From positions 186,001-250,000 of IMG/VR virus record IMGVR_UViG_3300022744_000020: a stretch of DNA of 64,000 nucleotides; one strand, 5' to 3'. The notes beneath the pieces were generated by a model. It was not told the DNA's origin, did no database searches, and saw nothing but the letters and a program-made list of their open reading frames with translations. This document shows, in pieces, positions 12,990 to 64,000 of the stretch; position 1 is the first letter of the stretch, and each line of letters opens with the position of its first letter. Position numbers and translations under genes: made by a program.

Positions 12990-14054
12990 ATGACCGAATT
13001 CAAGTATCTCAATCGCAAAACTGCTGAACTTCTTTTTGGAACTGACTTTCTAATACCTGGTCAGACCAACTCCGAACTCCATCGTGGGATTATAGCCACC
13101 AGGCAATCTCTTCAAATGCTGTCGGTTCAATTAGGGCAGCACTTCCCGATGCTCGGCACGATCTCTTTGTCGGACGCAAACATGTCCATCTTCCCAGAGG
13201 TTTCCGAGCAAGAGCAAATCAAGAACTTTCTCAAAGGAAAGAACGGGTACGGTGATGAAATTCGTCGTTTCATTGCTCGAATGGTTTGCTTCAGTGGACC
13301 TGTGTCGGAACGAATTGTGGATGACCGGATCATTTACCATCTGGGAACTCATCCGGAACTGACGGTTCTGAATAAAGAGTTTCTTTTGGCGTACCCCAAT
13401 AACCTGCCCCTATTGAGGATAAAGAATCCCAAGGATCTGAATGTCGCTTTCTTCCGATGGTTTCGTCAGCGTGCTCACAGTTTGAAAGTTCCTGTTTTCA
13501 AATCCGTTCGTTACCCGTTGGTGTCGATGGAGTTTGAACCCAATGGCGTTGGACACGCTATTCAGCACGAGCTAGAAGGTGTATTCACGTATGAAAACGA
13601 ATCGAGTATTCCGGACGATTTACTAGATGAAATAACCACCCACATTAGTAACCACGTTGGTCTGGGTCCGGATCTTGAACTTACGATGGAGGCCGTTCAG
13701 AGCACGCTGATTCAAATCTTGAACGAAGGAGTGAAATCTAAAGAATCACTGTATCTCTACGGTCAGGACCATCGCACTGAATCAAATCGCAGTCTGATTA
13801 TCAGTAAATTGAAAGAAGGTACGGTAATAGAAATACTTCTTAGCTATTACGACTATAACGGCCGAGAGGTTGGGTACAGACACGTCTGCGAAATTGGGGA
13901 GGAGTTGACGGAAGAAAAGAAAACGGAGGCTCTAAGCTGGATCAAAGATTGCTTTGAAAAGATCAAATCCCCCACCGATCAGTGGTTTGTCGCGGATGTC
14001 CTGATGAGGCGATACAAAGAACTGACCAAAGAAATCAAGTCCCAGCAGGAGTGA
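12990..14054 (+). CDS. Hypothetical protein
   Basis: 354-aa ORF. Confidence 0.8.
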   Translation: MTEFKYLNRKTAELLFGTDFLIPGQTNSELHRGIIATRQSLQMLSVQLGQHFPMLGTISLSDANMSIFPEVSEQEQIKNFLKGKNGYGDEIRRFIARMVCFSGPVSERIVDDRIIYHLGTHPELTVLNKEFLLAYPNNLPLLRIKNPKDLNVAFFRWFRQRAHSLKVPVFKSVRYPLVSMEFEPNGVGHAIQHELEGVFTYENESSIPDDLLDEITTHISNHVGLGPDLELTMEAVQSTLIQILNEGVKSKESLYLYGQDHRTESNRSLIISKLKEGTVIEILLSYYDYNGREVGYRHVCEIGEELTEEKKTEALSWIKDCFEKIKSPTDQWFVADVLMRRYKELTKEIKSQQE

Positions 14055-14067
14055 TTCCATCTTTTTT

Positions 14068-14094
14068 CAGTCACATATAACCTATGTGAATCGA
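14068..14094 (+). promoter_or_regulatory. Phage promoter-like motif
   Basis: CAGTCACATATAACCTATGTGAATCGA, near-identical copy at 38763; contains the TCACAT/ATGTGA inverted repeat. Confidence 0.65.
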
Positions 14095-14116
14095 AGCAAT
14101 CCTTGCTTCAGCCCAC

Positions 14117-14130
14117 TCCCGAGAAAGGGA
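14117..14130 (+). promoter_or_regulatory. RBS hairpin TCCC-GAGAAA-GGGA
   Basis: Covarying copy; ATG at 14138. Confidence 0.65.
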
Positions 14131-14137
14131 ATTAATC

Positions 14138-14443
14138 ATGGCAATGATGCGAATCACTTTTGGAAGACTGATGTTTTCCGTTCACGAAAAAGAGGCTGAA
14201 AAGTTAAATAAGGAGTTTATAGCGGCTGGTGGTGATCGCGCCGCCCTGGCAATACTCGTGAACAACGGCTGGAAGTTTCGTGTCATTCCAGCCCGACCAA
14301 ACCCTGGGGAGTTGGACCTCCCGCATGACTGGAAAGATATAGTCGAGGTAATTTCTCAGCCTCGCTTATCTTTGTGGGAAAGGTGCGTCCGACCCGAACC
14401 GATCCCCTTCCCCTCGTTTTCTGAATTTTCTCAGTTCTCCTGA
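14138..14443 (+). CDS. Hypothetical protein
   Basis: First gene after the promoter motif. Confidence 0.75.
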   Translation: MAMMRITFGRLMFSVHEKEAEKLNKEFIAAGGDRAALAILVNNGWKFRVIPARPNPGELDLPHDWKDIVEVISQPRLSLWERCVRPEPIPFPSFSEFSQFS

Positions 14444-16614: not shown

Positions 16615-16654
16615 ACATATATCATTCAACTGAACCAACCCAGACGAAAAAGGA
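16615..16654 (+). promoter_or_regulatory. Promoter-like motif plus ACCCAGACGAAAAAGGA leader
   Basis: ACATATATCATT at 16615; leader 17-mer also at 642 and 35820. Confidence 0.6.
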
Positions 16655-16660
16655 ATTCCC

Positions 16661-18720: not shown

Positions 18721-21700
18721 TTAAAGCAGTTTTGCTTTTACAACGCGCAAGTCAGCGTTGAGCCTTTCTACTTTGGTGGCTACCAAAGAACTCGATCCTT
18801 GGAACTCCTTGATCGAGTAATCCATACTGTCAAGAGTTTTGGCAAAGCTAGTTACCTCACCCGACTGCGCCAATTGAACTTCTTGTCCGTAAAACAAATA
18901 AGCCAGCCCGTTATCACCATACTCCAAAACAATCGGCCGAGCCTGCGTTCTCATCAACTCTACACCAGCGGCGTTTTTGCGGATGAAATAAGCGCTCTTG
19001 TTGACATTTGCACCCACATTGAATTCGTGGTCACCACTGCCCGTCAGTGTGGCGATCACTTGAGAATTTTCAGCCAGTACGACGTCCACAGTGTCGGTAA
19101 CCGCAGGACCCTGGAGATAAATTCTCGCATCTCCGATGTTCCATGCGCCCGGGTTAATGTTGGTTTTCAATGAGATCAAAGAGATCGATCTGCGACTACT
19201 GTAGCCAGCGCCCGGCAGAACCGTCAGTCTGAACCTCATCTGGAACCCGACATTCACTCCAGGAAGAACCAACGCACTCAGGTTTTCTTTGGTCAGCTTG
19301 GCCCAATTACTCCAAAGCTCATTCGGTAGTCTCCAAGAGAACTCAGCCAGAACGCCAGGGTCCAGATAGTCTCCTGCGTTTTGAGCCAAATTTGCGACTA
19401 CTTCATAATCTTTACCGCCTACCAGTGCCGAAGAATCTAACTTCAAACTCACCGAGTTCGGAAAGCCGAGATAGAAGTTCGAGGTCCATCCTCCGTTACT
19501 TGCGCTGGCTTGAAGTCCTGCACTTGCTGCATTCAGCGCTGCCGCAATGGTTCCCGCTCCAGCGTTGTACGGGATATCTGCTGTCGTGGCAATCGGCGCT
19601 CCGTATTGGTCATAGACCGAGAGTTTGAAAGTTCCAGAGGTCGGGGCAATCGCCGACACTAGAATGTGGTTCTTACTAGCTCCCGAATTTATCAGACCGA
19701 AGAGCAGAGGCCCCGCATTGACAAACGAGGTAACGCCATGAAACAAATACGGAACAGTTAGTAGCGCCGTGTCCCCCTCATTGGGAAGATAAAGAAGGCC
19801 AATCTGGTCAAACCAACACGTGCCTGAAATGATGGCTTCCGGCTCTCCTGAACACATTGGTCCGACGGTAATGTGTCCAGTGGTTGGTGAAAGCCCCATG
19901 TCAGCCCAATTACCTGCGACATAGTGAGTCGCTCCCGAGTGCGCTCTGGCAACCCCGCTTGGTGGGCAACTGACCAGATTGATTTGAGCGTTTTTGGAGA
20001 TCTTTCCCGCTGCGCTACCCCAAGGAGTAAACCCTGAAGCATTGGTAGCGAAGACCTTTCTCAGAATCAAATCCGTACCCAAATAATTTCCGGGCTCGTC
20101 CACAATAGAGGATCCAATGTTGTTTGTGAGCGAAATCCGGTCTACCTTCAACCCTGAACCCGAAGCATAAACCGCATTAGTGGCAAACCCACGACCATCA
20201 ATGTTAACGTCGGTGACGGTGGTGTTTTTAGAAGCTTGCAGTGAATAGATGATGTTTTGGCGATGCGGAGACGGAGCAGCCAAGGTAACACCAATCACTT
20301 TGGCATCTTCGCAATAGGCAACGCCCAAGCCACTGGGAACGTTAGCCAATAACGAACCAACTTCATTGGTTGGCTGATCAGCCAACTTTACATCAAAGAA
20401 TCGAACACCCGGACAACCACGTGCTTCAACATATCCTCCAGCAAACGTGAGGTTTCGAATGACCGTGTCTTTAGAAAGAGACTGAAAGATAGCCAGCGCC
20501 ATTGTTGCTCCGACATCCAAGGAGCGATCGAATGCGTAGCAAATAGTCGTCAGATCTTCAAGCGCTTTCACGTTTGGCAAATACTCAATCTGGAGTCTGG
20601 TACTTCCAGGGTTCTTACCGCAATTGAAAAGTCTCTTCAGTGAAACGTTCCCGTAGCAGCTCGACACGTACAAAAGCATTTGGTCGTTGACACGGTTTGT
20701 GAAGACTACTCCGTCGATATCAACATCGCCAGTCGTGCCGACGATGTAGGCACACGTCAGCCCGACCTGCCAAAGCTTCAGATACGTGAAAGCCACAGCA
20801 CGAAGATAAATTCTCGAGGTAAAACAGACCCACTCGGCGTCCATCGTTCCGGCAGGCTCCAACCAGATACAACTCATTCGGTCGCGATTTCGCTCCAGCG
20901 GATAGAGTCTCGGATTGGATTTTCCCTGGAGTTGAGTATTATCAATGGTCATTCTCATGGCTTTGGTATATTTTCCCCCGTTGGTGATGATGCCAAAGTT
21001 CGTCACACCTCCGTTGTAGCTGACGGCAAATGAGCTCGGACCCATACTCGGCAGTGCCGACAAAGCATCGGCCACCGCCTGTGGTGTCGTATTCCAAGCC
21101 AAAGCCGGAGTCGTTCCTAATGGTCCTGATTCATCTTCCAGAGAGATCGTGTAGGTTCCTCCGTTGATGATATTTTGGCCATTGTAGATTAACCACTCGT
21201 ACGTGTAATCAATCGGGAAGCGATTGGTGATGTAGATGTTGGGGATTCTAACTTTGCACCCGGTTGGAACCACGCAGCCGTTGATGCCATTTCCAGTGCT
21301 GAACACTCTGTCCGTGTGGTGCCAGAAGAAGAACTTCCCAGCCTCCCACGTACCCCCAACAAATCTATTTTTCTTTGTAGCGCCGTAGCAAATACCCGGA
21401 CCGACATCGTCGTTGTATTTGGGATCGATCGGTGCAATACCCCAAGGCTTGTATTTTCCGCTACCTGGAGCCGTCTCCACCTCCACGTAAGTGATCTCCG
21501 GAATTACGCCTCCGAAGAGCTGCTTGAAATCCCAAGTCTTTTCGGTTCCGTCACCAATACCGATCTCCATCGGAGTTCCACGGATGACCAATTTTCCTTG
21601 ACCCGTGGCCTTGATGTGCTGACCCATGTCATCCAGCACAATCACGATTGGTGTCGTGGCGCTTTCATTTTTTATCAGAATGGTTCCTCGACTCACGCAT

Positions 21701-21831
21701 TGAATCGATCCGGTATTCACCGTCGTACTCTGATCTATCGTGAGTACGGCGTTATTGATGATGTTGAATCCCTCGCCTTTGGCGTAGGTAACATCTTTCA
21801 AATTGGTGTTGGTTGCAACGACGATGGTCAT
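18721..21831 (-). CDS. Putative tailspike/receptor-binding virion protein (1036 aa)
   Basis: Beta-rich; central beta-helix-like coils; two GT(F/Y)xIS/LS...T..I/L.(W/Y)N....(V/I)A.AL repeats; C-terminal heptads. Confidence 0.6.
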   Translation of the reverse strand: MTIVVATNTNLKDVTYAKGEGFNIINNAVLTIDQSTTVNTGSIQCVSRGTILIKNESATTPIVIVLDDMGQHIKATGQGKLVIRGTPMEIGIGDGTEKTWDFKQLFGGVIPEITYVEVETAPGSGKYKPWGIAPIDPKYNDDVGPGICYGATKKNRFVGGTWEAGKFFFWHHTDRVFSTGNGINGCVVPTGCKVRIPNIYITNRFPIDYTYEWLIYNGQNIINGGTYTISLEDESGPLGTTPALAWNTTPQAVADALSALPSMGPSSFAVSYNGGVTNFGIITNGGKYTKAMRMTIDNTQLQGKSNPRLYPLERNRDRMSCIWLEPAGTMDAEWVCFTSRIYLRAVAFTYLKLWQVGLTCAYIVGTTGDVDIDGVVFTNRVNDQMLLYVSSCYGNVSLKRLFNCGKNPGSTRLQIEYLPNVKALEDLTTICYAFDRSLDVGATMALAIFQSLSKDTVIRNLTFAGGYVEARGCPGVRFFDVKLADQPTNEVGSLLANVPSGLGVAYCEDAKVIGVTLAAPSPHRQNIIYSLQASKNTTVTDVNIDGRGFATNAVYASGSGLKVDRISLTNNIGSSIVDEPGNYLGTDLILRKVFATNASGFTPWGSAAGKISKNAQINLVSCPPSGVARAHSGATHYVAGNWADMGLSPTTGHITVGPMCSGEPEAIISGTCWFDQIGLLYLPNEGDTALLTVPYLFHGVTSFVNAGPLLFGLINSGASKNHILVSAIAPTSGTFKLSVYDQYGAPIATTADIPYNAGAGTIAAALNAASAGLQASASNGGWTSNFYLGFPNSVSLKLDSSALVGGKDYEVVANLAQNAGDYLDPGVLAEFSWRLPNELWSNWAKLTKENLSALVLPGVNVGFQMRFRLTVLPGAGYSSRRSISLISLKTNINPGAWNIGDARIYLQGPAVTDTVDVVLAENSQVIATLTGSGDHEFNVGANVNKSAYFIRKNAAGVELMRTQARPIVLEYGDNGLAYLFYGQEVQLAQSGEVTSFAKTLDSMDYSIKEFQGSSSLVATKVERLNADLRVVKAKLL

Positions 21832-24336: not shown

Positions 24337-24420
24337 ATGTCATTACTTAATTTTTTGGCCCTAACCAACCAGATTGGGAAAGAGGAATGTAAATCGAGAC
24401 GCATTCCAGGTTTTTACAAC

Positions 24421-24481
24421 CGTATATAACTCTCATGAATCAAGTACGACTGTCGTGTTTGAACAACTCCCGAGAAAGGGA
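24421..24481 (+). promoter_or_regulatory. Promoter-like motif, 5' hairpin and RBS hairpin TCCC-GAGAAA-GGGA
   Basis: CGTATATAACTCTCATGAATC; stem TCAAGTACGA/TCGTGTTTGA; RBS hairpin at 24468-24481. Confidence 0.65.
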
Positions 24482-24488
24482 ATTAAAC

Positions 24489-24803
24489 ATGGAAAAGAAA
24501 GAAATTACCTATTTGGTCTACGCCCAAATAGGTGGAGGTTGGTCGCGACAGCCGCGATACATCCCCACCTCCACACGAAGCGATATGGTCGCTTCTTGGT
24601 GCCTGGTCTTTGGACCGGACACCGCCCGGTTGAATCCGGAGGGGGATGTAGAGGTGGAGACCAACAAGGTCTTCCAAGTTGCCGACTATGTCGGCTTGAC
24701 CAATCTGCTCGGTGAAGCAGATTGGCACCCCAGGACCAAAGTAGGTCTGGGGAACTTCATCGAAAGCTTGATCAGCTTATCGGTGCGCGGCATCTCGCCA
24801 TAA
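24489..24803 (+). CDS. Hypothetical protein
   Basis: ATG 7 nt after GGGA. Confidence 0.75.
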   Translation: MEKKEITYLVYAQIGGGWSRQPRYIPTSTRSDMVASWCLVFGPDTARLNPEGDVEVETNKVFQVADYVGLTNLLGEADWHPRTKVGLGNFIESLISLSVRGISP

Positions 24804-35812: not shown

Positions 35813-35843
35813 TTCAATCACCCAGACGAAAAAAGGATTCCCC

Positions 35844-38730: not shown

Positions 38731-38762
38731 TACTAATTTAAAAACCATTTTCCAGATTTTTA

Positions 38763-38790
38763 CAGTCACATATAACCAATGTGAATCGAG
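38763..38790 (+). promoter_or_regulatory. Phage promoter-like motif
   Basis: CAGTCACATATAACCAATGTGAATCGAG, near-identical to 14068. Confidence 0.65.
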
Positions 38791-49084: not shown

Positions 49085-49135
49085 GCTACTACCCTGGACG
49101 CCAAAAGCGTCCAGGGTAGTAGCTCCTTCTTTTTT
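49085..49135 (+). terminator. Long terminator hairpin, CAAAA loop
   Basis: GCTACTACCCTGGACGC-CAAAA-GCGTCCAGGGTAGTAGC plus T-rich tail. Confidence 0.85.
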
Positions 49136-49975: not shown

Positions 49976-50006
49976 GATGGTGTAGTCACATTCCAAAAAT
50001 TCATGG

Positions 50007-50072
50007 TCATATATACTCTCATTGAATCGCAAAGCAATTTCGCATAACGATTCACCCTCCTGAGAAAAAGGA
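50007..50072 (+). promoter_or_regulatory. Promoter-like motif, 5' hairpin and RBS hairpin TCCT-GAGAAAA-AGGA
   Basis: TCATATATACTCTCATTGAATC; GAATCG/CGATTC stem; RBS hairpin at 50058-50072. Confidence 0.65.
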
Positions 50073-50901: not shown

Positions 50902-51774
50902 ATGACCATTCCTACCGTCTACTCCCAAGCCCGCCCGCAGATCTTTACCGAGGAGGAAATCGCACAGATGACTCCCGTCAATCAACTCGCTTACGCGCGA
51001 CTGAAAAGACTCAATCCGGAGGAGGAAGCAGGCTTCTTCCGCTGGAGCGCCGGCTCGTTGGCCTTTGATTCCGATGTGGAGAACCATCCCTGCTGGGGCC
51101 ACATCTACGCCAATCGGATCCGTGAATTATTGGTGGGGCTCAAAGATGAGAATCTCTACGTTGAGGTGTTTGACATGGGGGAGTTCTGGGTCTACAACCT
51201 TCAGCTCAACAACCCTCAGCAATGGAAGATTCTCAATCAGGGGGTCTACCACTTTCAGACGGAATACCAGCAAAGTTTTGGCCATGTGTCGTCGGACGCA
51301 GATACCATGACGGTGATGTACAAATCCCGACCCATGGGCCCGGTTCCGGATCACAGCATCGATGCCTGGTGGATCTCGGACAGCTTGTTGACCCGCATGG
51401 TCGACTACTGGTCGGCCAAGAAGTATTTCCAGCGGCTGGAAACTCAGCAGCACCGATACGAAGTAGCCCCCATTACCCGGCTCATTTTGGAGTCGAGCAA
51501 CGGAGAAAAGAAACTGGTGGACATTTCCGGGCTTGTCGGCATGTTCCATTACGGGGACGAGGGTTCTGTGAGGCTGGCCTTTCGGTATTTGGACAACCAG
51601 AGAGACACTGGCTTGGAGGTGGGTACCAAGGAAGCCGCTGATCGTTACCAGAAGTTCATTTTGGACGAGTTGGCTGCTCAGGGGGTTCCCGTTCTGAACA
51701 ACAAGGCACCGGATCTGAAGGCGTTCTATCCCGCTCAAAACTACCGTCGATCTGCCCCGCTAATCCTCAGATAA
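50902..51774 (+). CDS. Hypothetical protein
   Basis: 290-aa ORF; C-terminus weakly resembles family A. Confidence 0.8.
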   Translation: MTIPTVYSQARPQIFTEEEIAQMTPVNQLAYARLKRLNPEEEAGFFRWSAGSLAFDSDVENHPCWGHIYANRIRELLVGLKDENLYVEVFDMGEFWVYNLQLNNPQQWKILNQGVYHFQTEYQQSFGHVSSDADTMTVMYKSRPMGPVPDHSIDAWWISDSLLTRMVDYWSAKKYFQRLETQQHRYEVAPITRLILESSNGEKKLVDISGLVGMFHYGDEGSVRLAFRYLDNQRDTGLEVGTKEAADRYQKFILDELAAQGVPVLNNKAPDLKAFYPAQNYRRSAPLILR

Positions 51775-51805: not shown

Positions 51806-51850
51806 ATACTGCCCCTTCCTCAAAAAGGAAGGGGCAGTATGCTTTTCTTT
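51806..51850 (+). terminator. Long terminator hairpin, CAAAA loop
   Basis: ATACTGCCCCTTCCT-CAAAA-AGGAAGGGGCAGTAT plus T-rich tail. Confidence 0.85.
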
Positions 51851-53805: not shown

Positions 53806-53862
53806 TCATACATTCACTCCAGAGTCCAAAAGACTCTGGAGTGAATGTATGATGCTTTTTTT
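53806..53862 (+). terminator. Long terminator hairpin, CAAAA loop
   Basis: 21-bp perfect stem TCATACATTCACTCCAGAGTC/GACTCTGGAGTGAATGTATGA plus T run. Confidence 0.88.
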
Positions 53863-58437: not shown

Positions 58438-58863
58438 ATGAAAACACTTGCCACTCCGCTCCCCCTAGATCCTTTCCTGGCTCAACATGCTTGGTTCCAA
58501 TCCGTCCAAAGCAAGAAACACTATTTGTTCTGGTGGTGTCCTGCCAACGAATGCTGGTCTTCTGGTCCCGATCTTCCGGCTGCGAGCGAGATCGGAGATT
58601 TCAGCTTTTTCTCCTGCTGTCCCAATCCGGGGTATCTTCCCGCCAAAGACACCCTCGTGATCGAGTACCTGCAATCCATTCGATCGATAGTGCCTCCGAC
58701 TGAACTCCGATATGCACATCGTGCCGAACTCATCAAACTCTTTCGATCTAAACTTGGATTTAGCTTGAGGCAAGCCAAGGATGAAAGCGAAGCGATCCTG
58801 GACCGGCTCTGGATGAGCGATTCGGACACTTACGCCGGTGCCCTACTGAACGCCGTTGGTTAA
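58438..58863 (+). CDS. Hypothetical protein with C-terminal bL12-CTD-like motif
   Basis: ELIKLFRSKLGFSLRQAKDESE. Confidence 0.6.
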   Translation: MKTLATPLPLDPFLAQHAWFQSVQSKKHYLFWWCPANECWSSGPDLPAASEIGDFSFFSCCPNPGYLPAKDTLVIEYLQSIRSIVPPTELRYAHRAELIKLFRSKLGFSLRQAKDESEAILDRLWMSDSDTYAGALLNAVG

Positions 58864-58888
58864 ATCACTCACTCCGCAAGGAAATTCA

Positions 58889-59938
58889 ATGACTACACGC
58901 ACTAATTCTGGAATCGTTACCTTTGGTTGGAACGGCAGCATTCACGACCAATATTTCACCTCGAACCCTATGGAGCTTTTGGAACCAGGGCAATACGAAT
59001 TCATGCAAGACAGTGGCATGTTGTCGGCAATTGAGTCTCGTACTCAGCCGGTTGAGTTGTCTCTCTGGGCTATTGAAAGTTCCAATCACTGTCTTCGTCA
59101 CGGCTTTGATACGCTGAATATTTCAATGTACGCTGCTCCAAAAAAGGCCCTACAGACCAACAAGTTCTTGCTTTCGGAAATTGTCATCGACCCAAAAACA
59201 GACAAGGCTCGGTTCAGTCATCAAAAATTAGAACTAAAGAAGCCCCTCTACGTTTGGTTGGAGCCTAAAGACGGTTGGAAACTTCGCGATGGTCGGGCAA
59301 CTCATCCAAATGCGGAGCGTATTGGAAAGACATCTTCAATCAGTATCAACCTGCAACGCATGAGCGTGACTGAGGTCGGGGACGCCCTTCCCAATTATTC
59401 GCTGCCAGAAGCGATGAAGGCGGTGCAGTCTAATTCAAAAGAACATTGGTTTAAATTCATTGCTGGAAATTATGAAGGAAAACCCCCACGACCCACTGAT
59501 TCATTGTTGGAAGCCTTGATGGTGCAGGCCGCAACTATGGAAGGAATTCACGATAAAGAATACCTCAAGCTTTGTACAGCGCTGAGTGAAACCCATTCTG
59601 GTCTTAATTGGCCTCAAGAAGTTCTGACCAAGGCTTTTGAGGCGATGGCTGGGGATCGTTCACTCAATACCGCGGCTGAAAATCTGCACTATGAAGGATT
59701 GTTTGGTCGCGCCCTGATTCTGTCCGGTGCCGCTCGGGCCACCTTGTTGGCTTTGCATCGTGTCGGACCTCTGAGAGATGGCGACGTCCCGAGTAAAGCC
59801 GGCAGGGACGAGTTATTGGCGATCGGATTGATCGAAAAGATCATCGTTCGTGGAGAGGACGGGTATCAAGCCTGCAATTATCGAGGTCGCGATGTGATGA
59901 AAGCACTGAACGTTCTTTATCCGGATAAAAAATTATAG
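58889..59938 (+). CDS. Hypothetical protein with C-terminal winged-helix-like segment
   Basis: AAGGA RBS; DELLAIGLIEK...CNYRGRDV. Confidence 0.75.
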   Translation: MTTRTNSGIVTFGWNGSIHDQYFTSNPMELLEPGQYEFMQDSGMLSAIESRTQPVELSLWAIESSNHCLRHGFDTLNISMYAAPKKALQTNKFLLSEIVIDPKTDKARFSHQKLELKKPLYVWLEPKDGWKLRDGRATHPNAERIGKTSSISINLQRMSVTEVGDALPNYSLPEAMKAVQSNSKEHWFKFIAGNYEGKPPRPTDSLLEALMVQAATMEGIHDKEYLKLCTALSETHSGLNWPQEVLTKAFEAMAGDRSLNTAAENLHYEGLFGRALILSGAARATLLALHRVGPLRDGDVPSKAGRDELLAIGLIEKIIVRGEDGYQACNYRGRDVMKALNVLYPDKKL

Positions 59939-59940
59939 GA

Positions 59941-60468
59941 AGATCCCTATAATCTGCGAAAGCAGAAATGCCATTTGAGATAGGGTTGGGACTGGTAACG
60001 GGGCCCAATGACTTCAACCTTAACGGGTTGCGCTCCAGTGGAGCAGCGAAGTCGCAGATGCTGTCTCTGGAAGACCGGGAACCTGAAAAGTAATCCCGCG
60101 TCGGCATCACTGTGCCTATGGGTGTAGTCAGTGATGTTTATAAACGAACCATCCGTGACAACTCAGACTTGTCACGGAGTTCAAGGTAGGGAGGGAAATC
60201 GAAATTAACTCCCCTAGAAGTCCTTGGTCATGCCCACCACTCGGAAAGCCCCCTTCCGCTGGGAATGTTTCGACGAAATTCCAGACTCTGAGGGGTTTGG
60301 ATGGATGAAAATCCACTCGTGACTTTAAGCCGGGCCTCAGCCCAAAACCTGCCCGTGTAGCCGGGCATAGGCAAGGGTATGCCGAAGTTAAAATCGGAAG
60401 TCGCACCACAGATCTTCCACCCAAAAGAAACGAATCTTCGCCTGCTACCTTGCGTGGAAGACCAGTCT
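59941..60468 (+). ncRNA. Candidate large ornate ncRNA (~530 nt)
   Basis: No credible ORF; at least 14 helices in nested multibranch domains; GAAA x3 and GTAA tetraloops; own terminator. Confidence 0.75.
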
Positions 60469-60470
60469 CT

Positions 60471-60520
60471 CTGCCCCACCCTCATGCTCAAAAGGCGTGA
60501 GGGTGGGGCAGTTCTTTTTT
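60471..60520 (+). terminator. Long terminator hairpin, CAAAA loop
   Basis: CTGCCCCACCCTCATGCT-CAAAA-GGCGTGAGGGTGGGGCAG plus T run. Confidence 0.88.
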
Positions 60521-60540
60521 GGTTATTCTAAAGATTAATA

Positions 60541-60553
60541 GACACATATCATC
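60541..60553 (+). promoter_or_regulatory. Phage promoter-like motif
   Basis: GACACATATCATC after an AT-rich tract. Confidence 0.55.
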
Positions 60554-60583
60554 AAGGTGTAACCACCGCCAACGAAAGCAGAT

Positions 60584-60964
60584 ATGTCGCAACAAAAGAC
60601 CCATGCCGAAATCCTGCAAGCCCAGTGCTTGAGCCTTGGTGAGCTTTACCAGGCTGCCAAAGCCACTCTGGACGAAAACACCAGACTGACAGCCACTTTG
60701 GCTTCCTGTACTCGTGAGCGAGATGAAGCTCGGAAGAAGCTTGCCGAACTGCAAACAGCCGGGACAACCGAAGGTGATCAGATCACTTTGTCGAAAGAAA
60801 CTTTCCAGAAGCTGATCGATCTCGGGGAAAGATTTCTCGATAGGGATTTTGATGCGTTCACTGACCGGTCGGTGTTCCGAGGCACTTCGGAAGAATACCA
60901 TCAGAAATACAACCCTCAGGAGTATGAGTTGATCCAAGCTCTTCAGAAACGCATGTACGAATAA
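60584..60964 (+). CDS. Coiled-coil hypothetical protein
   Basis: First gene after the promoter motif. Confidence 0.75.
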   Translation: MSQQKTHAEILQAQCLSLGELYQAAKATLDENTRLTATLASCTRERDEARKKLAELQTAGTTEGDQITLSKETFQKLIDLGERFLDRDFDAFTDRSVFRGTSEEYHQKYNPQEYELIQALQKRMYE

Positions 60965-63643: not shown

Positions 63644-63660
63644 TTTGGTATTTTTTACAA

Positions 63661-63690
63661 ACATACATCATCGGTTAGGTAAAACTAACC
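63661..63690 (+). promoter_or_regulatory. Promoter-like motif plus 5' hairpin
   Basis: ACATACATCATC, then GGTTAG-GTAAAA-CTAACC. Confidence 0.55.
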
Positions 63691-63703: not shown

Positions 63704-64000
63704 ATGACGTTTCTCCAAGAACAGATTGCTCGAGTCGAATACCTTCGTGCAAAAATCGCAGCAATGGATCGCGACTACCACGAACAGGGACTTCCCCGCG
63801 TTAGCGACGATGTCTATAATCAGGCTTATTCGGAGCTAGTGAAGCTTGAAGAATTGACGGGATTGGATTCCAGCCGTTCCCCGACCCAGGTGGCTACTTG
63901 GAAGCCAAAGAAGACCTTCGAGAAATACACTCACCAGCGCCCTATGCTTTCCATCAAGACGCTGACGGACTCCAGTAAAGAGGCCGCGGTACAGTTTGTA
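63704..64000 (+). CDS. ligA: NAD-dependent DNA ligase, N-terminal fragment (runs off the window)
   Basis: Hand translation MTFLQEQIARVEYLRAKIAAMDRDYHEQGLPRVSDDVYNQ...LE...SPTQV...FEKYTHQRPMLSI. Confidence 0.88.
   Translation, partial: MTFLQEQIARVEYLRAKIAAMDRDYHEQGLPRVSDDVYNQAYSELVKLEELTGLDSSRSPTQVATWKPKKTFEKYTHQRPMLSIKTLTDSSKEAAVQFV

Follow-up and report, generated by a model that had tools for sequence, protein, structure and literature searches.

A probable new family of large structured RNA encoded by an uncultivated 270-kb phage

What is encoded by a stretch of roughly 560–590 bases that lies between two genes of an uncultivated jumbo-size phage, codes for no protein and is nonetheless very strongly conserved? 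The stretch is located in a 64,000-nucleotide segment (the window; all coordinates refer to it) of the 270,383-bp IMG/VR contig IMGVR_UViG_3300022744_000020, window position 1 corresponding to about contig position 180,001. The genes of the window are packed almost entirely on the + strand, and the recognizable ones encode ribonucleotide reductase subunits, an SNF2-type helicase, two SLT transglycosylases, a GNAT acetyltransferase and dihydrofolate reductase. The habitat and host of the phage are not known, and two of its proteins compared with the cultured phages of INPHARED returned no match. A preliminary description, made by inspection of the sequence alone, proposed that the largest gap of this densely coding genome specifies an ornate non-coding RNA of about 530 nt read on the + strand and ending in its own terminator, a member or analogue of the GOLLD and ROOL class and possibly a new family. 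The observation was confirmed by the analysis reported here, and the core of the interpretation, a large structured non-coding RNA analogous to but distinct from GOLLD and ROOL, is supported.

Residues 59939–60583 (645 nt) constitute the largest stretch of the 64 kb without a plausible gene, and the only one of at least 200 nt that has no + strand ORF of 60 aa or more and is not covered by a long minus-strand gene. Every complementary segment listed in the preliminary description is present at its position. A folding energy no better than that of shuffled sequences had been named in advance as grounds for rejecting the RNA, and this outcome was not obtained: the + strand RNA 59939–60520 has a minimum free energy of −230 kcal/mol compared with −185.7 ± 6.6 for dinucleotide shuffles (z = −6.7), and 0 of 100 shuffles folded as well. 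The minus strand also folds well (z = −5.2), such that folding energy alone does not give the strand.

Homologues were sought with the proteins of the two flanking genes and of a third neighbor in 5.8 billion proteins, and the three protein searches yielded only three other phage fragments that carry the locus, together with a 2.3-kb JGI contig too short to reach the RNA. The first fragment, L003 (Logan ERR13176177, 4,995 nt), has the same gene order and the whole element; the second, L006 (Logan SRR33038191, 1,474 nt), also contains the whole element; the third, L007 (JGI 3300043408, 1,220 nt), starts inside the terminator and thus retains only the last ~15 nt of the element and the spacer that follows. 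DNA searches added no relative. A blastn search of INPHARED phages with the element and a search of PLSDB plasmids were negative. Pattern scans of IMG/VR with invariant blocks returned only the source contig and chance matches in coding DNA (three loci, L005, L008 and L009), an 18-mer scan of JGI metagenomes returned 72 loci of which only one, the same contig, is real, and a 19-mer scan of GTDB genomes gave one chance hit in Paenalcaligenes. The family is real but rare, being known from only 3–4 phages and occurring once in IMG/VR. The features of the locus are collected in Table 1.

Table 1 Features of the locus in window coordinates, with the observations that bear on each.
Positions	Strand	Feature	Observations
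58856..59938	+	Upstream gene, 360 aa, function unknown; its C-terminal 65–100 residues form a widespread small domain	No Pfam or NCBIfam match; the domain has 331 cluster representatives at E <= 0.001, mostly stand-alone proteins of about 100 aa; AlphaFold model of low confidence (pLDDT 44.6)
59925..59953	+	Conserved A-rich block followed by a perfect palindrome, TTATAGG-N6-CCTATAA (59933–59952), overlapping a consensus TATAAT (59948–59953); either a promoter with an operator or the 5' hairpin of the RNA	Block invariant in L006 and L003; after the stop codon in L003, overlapping the last five codons of the upstream gene in the window; loop between the arms differs at 2 positions, arms at none; no sigma-70 type −35 box; no other copy in the window; segment 59939–59970 is 94% identical to L003
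59953..59966	+	Hairpin UCUGC-GAAA-GCAGA	Invariant in all three sequences; consistent with pairing, without covariation
59957..59970	+	Copy 1 of a 14-nt direct repeat, CGAAAGCAGAAATG; its ATG opens an ORF that is not conserved	Matches 60573–60586 at 13 of 14 positions, the only two copies in 64 kb; ORF of 41 aa in the window and in L006, 13 aa in L003 after a 2-nt deletion (alignment read by eye)
59971..60070	+	Domain 1, multibranch, closed by 59971–73/60068–70 plus 59977–83/60061–67; contains the UUGGG/CCCAA hairpin (59986–60008) and GACUUC/GAAGUC (60010–15/60048–53), the latter holding two hairpins	Closing helix with 1 compensatory and 2 one-sided changes and no break; hairpin 60030–36/60040–47 with 2 compensatory changes; 81% identical to L003
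60073..60182	+	Three consecutive hairpins, 60073–60102, 60103–60138 and 60146–60182	Stems 60073–80/60094–102, 60103–12/60129–38 with its tip 60116–19/60124–27, and 60146–61/60169–82; together 10 pairs with changes on both sides (1, then 3 + 2, then 4); segment 60071–60182 only 70% identical to L003
60183..60345	+	Nearly invariant core, with a 62-nt block identical in all three sequences (about 60181–60242) and hairpin 60237–46/60254–62	92% identical to L003 and 99% to L006; 60242–46/60254–58 with 2 compensatory changes; mutually exclusive helices 60259–64/60279–84 and 60280–88/60293–301, each with support; two invariant loops could form a 7-bp contact, 60199–205 with 60267–73
60346..60460	+	Variable 3' region with 7-nt and 10-nt indels and hairpins that differ between homologues	64% identical to L003, 22 gap columns; predicted helices mostly broken in L003; candidate covarying pairings 60374–79/60446–51 (2 compensatory) and 60353–57 with 60173–77 (3 compensatory, 1 one-sided)
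60471..60519	+	Intrinsic terminator: 18-bp stem (60471–60511; 12 G-C pairs), CAAAA loop and T run TTCTTTTTT	T run on the + strand only; 4 compensatory changes across L003 and L006; 81% identical to L003
60525..60552	+	Promoter-like motif, ATTCTA-N16-TATCAT, in the spacer between the terminator and the next gene	Member of a recurrent motif family; the 61-nt spacer is 93–100% identical in four phages
60573..60586	+	Copy 2 of the 14-nt repeat, CGAAAGCAGATATG; the last 11 nt of the 5' UTR and the start codon of the 126-aa gene	Kept in L006, and kept with one C-to-T change in L003 and L007
60584..60964	+	Downstream gene, 126 aa, function unknown, predicted to be helical	78–91% identical in three relatives; no family match; model of a long N-terminal helix plus a small helical domain (pLDDT 73) without significant structural match

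Comparison with the flanking genes shows that the element is under strong selection. It is identical to L006 at 575 of 584 positions (98.5%), whereas in both flanking genes the third codon positions are 85.5–85.7% identical and the second codon positions 97.1–97.6% identical. The element therefore changes about ten times more slowly than nearby synonymous sites. Identity to L003 is 78%, compared with 39–56% at third positions; second positions were not used in this comparison. Conservation is uneven along the element.

The conservation is not that of a coding sequence. ORFs of 39–98 aa exist on both strands, and a 41-aa gene was called on L006, but the ORFs differ between the window and L003, where the 41-aa ORF is not found, and no ORF matches Pfam at E <= 1. 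Substitutions fall 49/37/34 by position modulo 3, without codon periodicity, and the indels are mostly of 1–2 nt (lengths 1, 1, 1, 2, 3, 7, 10 and so on). Codon-type conservation of a minus-strand ORF had been named beforehand as an outcome that would overturn the RNA interpretation. The one apparently shared ORF does lie on the minus strand, with 98 aa in the window and 105 aa in L003. However, the two translations are similar only where the DNA is invariant and are unrelated in between, because 1-nt indels shift the frame.

Helix conservation was assessed by folding the alignment of the window, L006 and L003 with RNAalifold, which gave 186 pairs, 20 of which are kept through changes on both sides. 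In 100 column shuffles that keep the conservation pattern the compensatory pairs number 6.2 ± 2.0 with a maximum of 11, and the fold energy is −133 ± 6.4 compared with −206 observed (z = −11.4). Four helices have three or more compensatory pairs, against 0.10 expected, and the L003 sequence alone folds with z = −6.0. Only two truly diverged sequences exist, the window/L006 pair and L003; the covariation therefore rests on few independent events, R-scape-type statistics are not applicable, and a covariance model was not built. Most pairs of the core never vary, so that its fold is untested by covariation, and two diverged sequences do not resolve the variable 3' region. The well-supported helices are the closing helix of domain 1, the hairpin 60030–36/60040–47 within it, the three consecutive hairpins that follow, 60242–46/60254–58 in the core, and the terminator.

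Of the helices drawn in the preliminary description, about half are confirmed or, for lack of variation, not open to this test, and about a third are wrong. Compensatory changes confirm the 10-bp helix 60152/60169 (4 double changes), CGGGA/TCCCG at 60076/60094 (1), the second hairpin inside GACTTC/GAAGTC at 60030–47 (2), and the terminator (4). TCTGC-GAAA-GCAGA, TTGGG/CCCAA, GACTTC/GAAGTC (5 of 6 pairs kept), CAAGG/CCTTG, TAGGG/CCCTA, GTCATG/CGTGAC (one U-A to U-G change), TGGAT/ATCCA and CCGA/TCGG are consistent with the homologues or invariant. GCCCG/CGGGC is replaced in L003 by a different, longer hairpin at the same place. Four local helices and the long-range pair are contradicted. CCCTAT/ATAGGG has an A·C mismatch in L003, and that segment pairs instead with 60061–67; GATGCTG/CGGCATC clashes with hairpin 60103–60138, which has 3 double changes; AAGCCCC/GGGGTTT is broken by the G60294A change in L006; TCTTCCAC/GTGGAAGA has two mismatches in L006 and is absent in L003; and the long-range GACTGG/CCAGTC has its 5' partner largely deleted in L003. 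All four GNRA loops noted at the outset exist in the window, but only GAAA at 59958 and GAAA at 60085 are kept in L003, whereas GUAA at 59995 and GAAA at 60307 are not.

Since folding energy does not separate the strands, the assignment to the + strand relies on three observations: the T run lies on one side of the terminator only, the terminator covaries, and helices that contain a compensatory pair have 11 G·U cells and 0 A·C cells. The terminator belongs to a phage-wide class with a 15–20 bp stem, a CAAAA loop and a T tail, seen also at 49085, 51806 and 53807. The promoter-like motif directly after it matches ATTCCA-N16-TATAAC, which recurs at 14054, 24403, 38749 and 49990, and by eye near 63650, in each case ahead of + strand genes; a degenerate pattern gives 3 matches against 0.05 expected. 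This motif is read as the promoter of the 126-aa gene, and on that reading the structured element closes one transcription unit and is not the leader of the next. At the 5' edge the consensus TATAAT would start the RNA near 59960, and the palindrome is either an operator or a 5' hairpin; no transcript, 5' end or abundance was observed, expression data not being part of the analysis. A position-weight scan with the phage's motif family found no promoter of the recurrent type in front of the element, and no strong + strand terminator lies between 53852 and 60471. Read-through from upstream genes is thus also expected, and the element, rather than forming its own transcription unit, could be the 3' end of an operon transcript.

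A match to a known family, which had been set out beforehand as the result that would remove the novelty, was not found. Rfam 15, in which GOLLD, ROOL, OLE, introns, RNase P and tmRNA are all curated, gave no match at the gathering score in the whole window, and at E <= 10 the element, its two halves and L003 gave only chance hits to small unrelated families. ARAGORN found no tRNA or tmRNA gene in the window or in the related loci, and no tRNA gene lies within 60 kb. The element is therefore not GOLLD, ROOL, OLE, a group I or group II intron, RNase P RNA or tmRNA, and neither HEARO nor the other curated large RNAs matched. The neighboring proteins do not disclose the function of the RNA: searches of Pfam, PHROGs, NCBIfam and PDB sequences were empty, the model of the 360-aa protein was too poor for a structure search, and a weak, sub-threshold resemblance to winged-helix families is not evidence.

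The best explanation is that the region from about 59933 or 59960 to 60519 encodes a new family of large, multi-domain, structured non-coding RNA, a reading that is held with moderate confidence. The analysis itself demonstrates that the DNA is non-coding and under purifying selection stronger than that on the second codon positions of its neighbors, that at least seven helices keep pairing through compensatory change, that the element ends in a covarying intrinsic terminator that works only on the + strand, that the next gene has its own promoter-like motif after that terminator, and that no known family matches. It is by inference that the RNA is made from the + strand, either from the TATAAT at 59948 or by read-through, that it accumulates as a stable folded product, that the covariation-supported 5' half, with one multibranch domain and three hairpins, presents the nearly invariant 160-nt core, and that the invariant loops and junctions of this core make tertiary, intermolecular or protein contacts. 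The RNA most likely acts in trans as a folded scaffold or decoy, alone or with a phage protein, in the manner proposed for ROOL and GOLLD, and is not thought to regulate the adjacent gene. The confinement of the family to one narrow phage clade is, however, also what a lineage-specific cis element would show.

Among the alternatives, the one that survives best, though unlikely, is a structured 3' untranslated region, transcribed only as the tail of the upstream operon and acting in cis, for example on stability, processing or translation of the upstream genes. The lack of an intervening terminator and of a recurrent-type promoter agrees with this view, as does the start of the element, in the window, inside the last codons of the 360-aa gene. 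However, a terminator hairpin alone protects a 3' end, so 500 nt of covarying helices and a 160-nt invariant core are far more than such a role needs. Moreover, the upstream gene is the least conserved part of the locus (52% amino acid identity) while the element is strongly conserved, and a consensus TATAAT with a conserved palindrome sits at its 5' edge.

A very long 5' leader, riboswitch-like or a protein-dependent attenuator whose terminator controls read-through into the 126-aa gene, is less probable still. The terminator ends 65 nt before the ATG of the gene, the spacer is conserved in four phages, the 14-nt sequence of the leader recurs at the start codon, and some alternative pairings covary. 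Nonetheless, the spacer carries the motif shared with at least four other intergenic sites upstream of + strand genes, and the terminator is of the general class of this phage. Inspection of the covarying pairings revealed no conserved antiterminator against the 5' arm of the terminator, but as activity of the promoter-like motif was not shown, the criteria for a leader are neither fulfilled nor excluded. Riboswitch and T-box leaders are much shorter, and none matched. A role at the DNA level, as a replication origin, packaging site or recombination site, is improbable: the many inverted repeats, including the palindrome at 59933–59952, and the similar folding energies of the two strands would be compatible with it, but there are no iterons or tandem repeats, the composition is not AT-rich and shows no skew change, the helices tolerate G·U but not A·C, which is an RNA signature, and a + strand terminator is an integral, covarying part of the element. 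A protein-coding region is the least likely, given the lack of a conserved frame described above.

The closest known system is ROOL RNA (about 580 nt, encoded by phages and prophages), which forms an octameric RNA-only cage (PMC12286853). The element resembles ROOL in being encoded by a phage, in its length, in its many hairpins and multibranch junctions, and in a conserved body interrupted by a region with little sequence or structural conservation, a linker in ROOL (PMC12286853) and 60346–60460 here; the function is unknown and no partner protein is evident. It differs in the absence of a match to the ROOL covariance model even at E <= 10 and of nearby tRNA genes; assembly into a homo-oligomeric cage through kissing loops and A-minor contacts was not assayed, and only the invariant candidate loop–loop complementarity was seen. 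GOLLD RNA (more than 800 nt, encoded by phages and prophages) is often, though not universally, beside tRNA genes and forms a 14-mer cage (PMC12286853). The element is likewise a large ornate phage RNA with one strongly conserved and one less conserved part and a terminator behind it, but it does not match the covariance model, is shorter and has no association with tRNA genes. OLE RNA (about 610 nt) occurs in extremophilic Firmicutes and works with the OapA/B/C proteins (PMC12286853). Its size and degree of structure are similar, and the element could plausibly work with proteins encoded next to it, yet it does not match the OLE model and is carried by a phage, not a cell. The neighboring proteins matched no protein family, which leaves the presence of oap genes undecided, since no search was aimed at the oap proteins specifically.

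The 14-nt repeat recalls autoregulation by target mimicry in ribosomal-protein operons such as the L1, S8 and L20 systems, since a sequence inside the structured RNA that recurs at the translation start of the adjacent conserved gene is the layout expected if the gene product binds the RNA and also a mimic site on its own mRNA. Both copies are kept in L003. The repeat also suits pairing of AUCUGC (59952–57) with GCAGAU (60578–83), and it could be chance, a rough estimate of the expectation within 700 nt being about 0.04. The comparison rests on sequence resemblance only, no binding was shown, and the 126-aa protein has no recognizable RNA-binding fold. In addition, 60353–57 changes from CCGUG to UUCUC in parallel with the 5' arm of the 10-bp helix and can therefore pair with the same 3' arm. 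Together with the two supported partners of 60279–84 and the complementary invariant loops, these features hint at alternative conformations or contacts between molecules, which two lineages do not prove. A more speculative and unlikely reading, not ruled out by the data, is that the RNA is the core of a new phage ribonucleoprotein or self-assembling RNA particle. In this view the invariant core and its self-complementary loops would mediate assembly, the covarying but mutually exclusive pairings (60173–77 with either 60153–57 or 60353–57, and 60279–84 with either 60259–64 or 60293–301) would reflect a conformational switch or domain-swapped contacts between molecules, and the 126-aa protein would bind the site CGAAAGCAGA(A/U)AUG both in the RNA and at its own start codon, so that its synthesis is tuned to the amount of RNA.

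Very few bacterial or phage non-coding RNAs exceed 500 nt (OLE, GOLLD, ROOL and a handful more), and the first structures of these showed unexpected RNA-only cages (PMC12286853), yet none has a known function. The element described here is a further kind of large ornate phage RNA with no detectable relation to the known ones. It also shows that such RNAs can be missed by surveys that need many copies: the IMG/VR survey in PMC10690425 required at least three regions and found motifs of 29–151 nt, and would presumably have missed it. The locus offers concrete handles for experiments in its defined helices, defined 3' end, invariant core, and repeated 14-mer linking the RNA to the neighboring gene. 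A further, unrelated family in a jumbo-size phage would add a new sequence and fold class for testing whether large phage RNAs generally self-assemble.

Further coding regions were noted in the window, and their coordinates are listed in the table together with those of the non-coding features. Two proteins of more than 1,000 amino acids have no Pfam match. The 1,132-residue protein also yielded no tblastn match in 50,697 cultured phage records, so the phage lineage has no cultured relative in that collection. A 290-residue protein exhibits a weak match to the ParE-like toxin family, with an E value of 0.006 and a score of 16.9 bits, which is below the curated cut-off of 28. An additional ORF that runs off the end of the window was not included in the searches. 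The C-terminal third of the 360-residue protein comprises a small domain with the conserved pattern GPL.DGD.PSK.GR..L...G...K..V.GEDGY.A.TY.G. This domain is found in 331 cluster representatives, mostly stand-alone proteins of about 100 residues, and it has no Pfam, NCBIfam or PDB match, hence it is a widespread uncharacterized domain.

Coordinates of additional features in the 64-kb window.
Feature	Position in window
Recurrent 40-nt motif	14054-14093, 24403-24442, 38749-38788, 49990-50029, 60525-60564; by eye also about 63645-63675
Long terminator hairpins with CAAAA loop	49085-49123, 51806-51840, 53807-53851, 60471-60511
Shorter terminator type, GGGGCTTCGGCCCC followed by T's	565, 38704, 39177, 50371
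Near-identical 5' UTR and start regions	14115-14147 and 24466-24498; 16638-16660, 35820-35842 and 628-656
Weaker resemblance to the second shared 5' UTR sequence, inside the RNA	60405-60433
Small domain of the 360-aa protein	59618-59935
290-aa protein, weak match to the ParE-like toxin family	50902-51774
Two proteins of more than 1,000 aa	45670-49068 and 18721-21831 (minus strand)
ORF running off the end of the window	63704-64000

Near-identical 5' UTR and start regions are shared by different genes. The shared sequences are ACTCCCGAGAAAGGGAATTAA.CATGG, and ACCCAGACGAAAAAGGAATTCCC before ATG. The structured RNA itself contains a segment with a weaker resemblance to the second of these sequences, with 69% identity.

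The terminators of the window include a family of unusually long hairpins, 15-20 bp, all of which share the loop CAAAA and a T-rich tail. The shared loop suggests a common recognition or processing feature. The second terminator type is shorter and is likewise followed by T's. At least two copies of a recurrent 40-nt motif follow terminators directly. This motif, with the consensus ATTCCA-N16-(C)ATATAAC followed by a short inverted repeat, lies ahead of + strand genes, and its upstream hexamer does not resemble the sigma-70 TTGACA box. The motif is probably a phage-specific promoter class.
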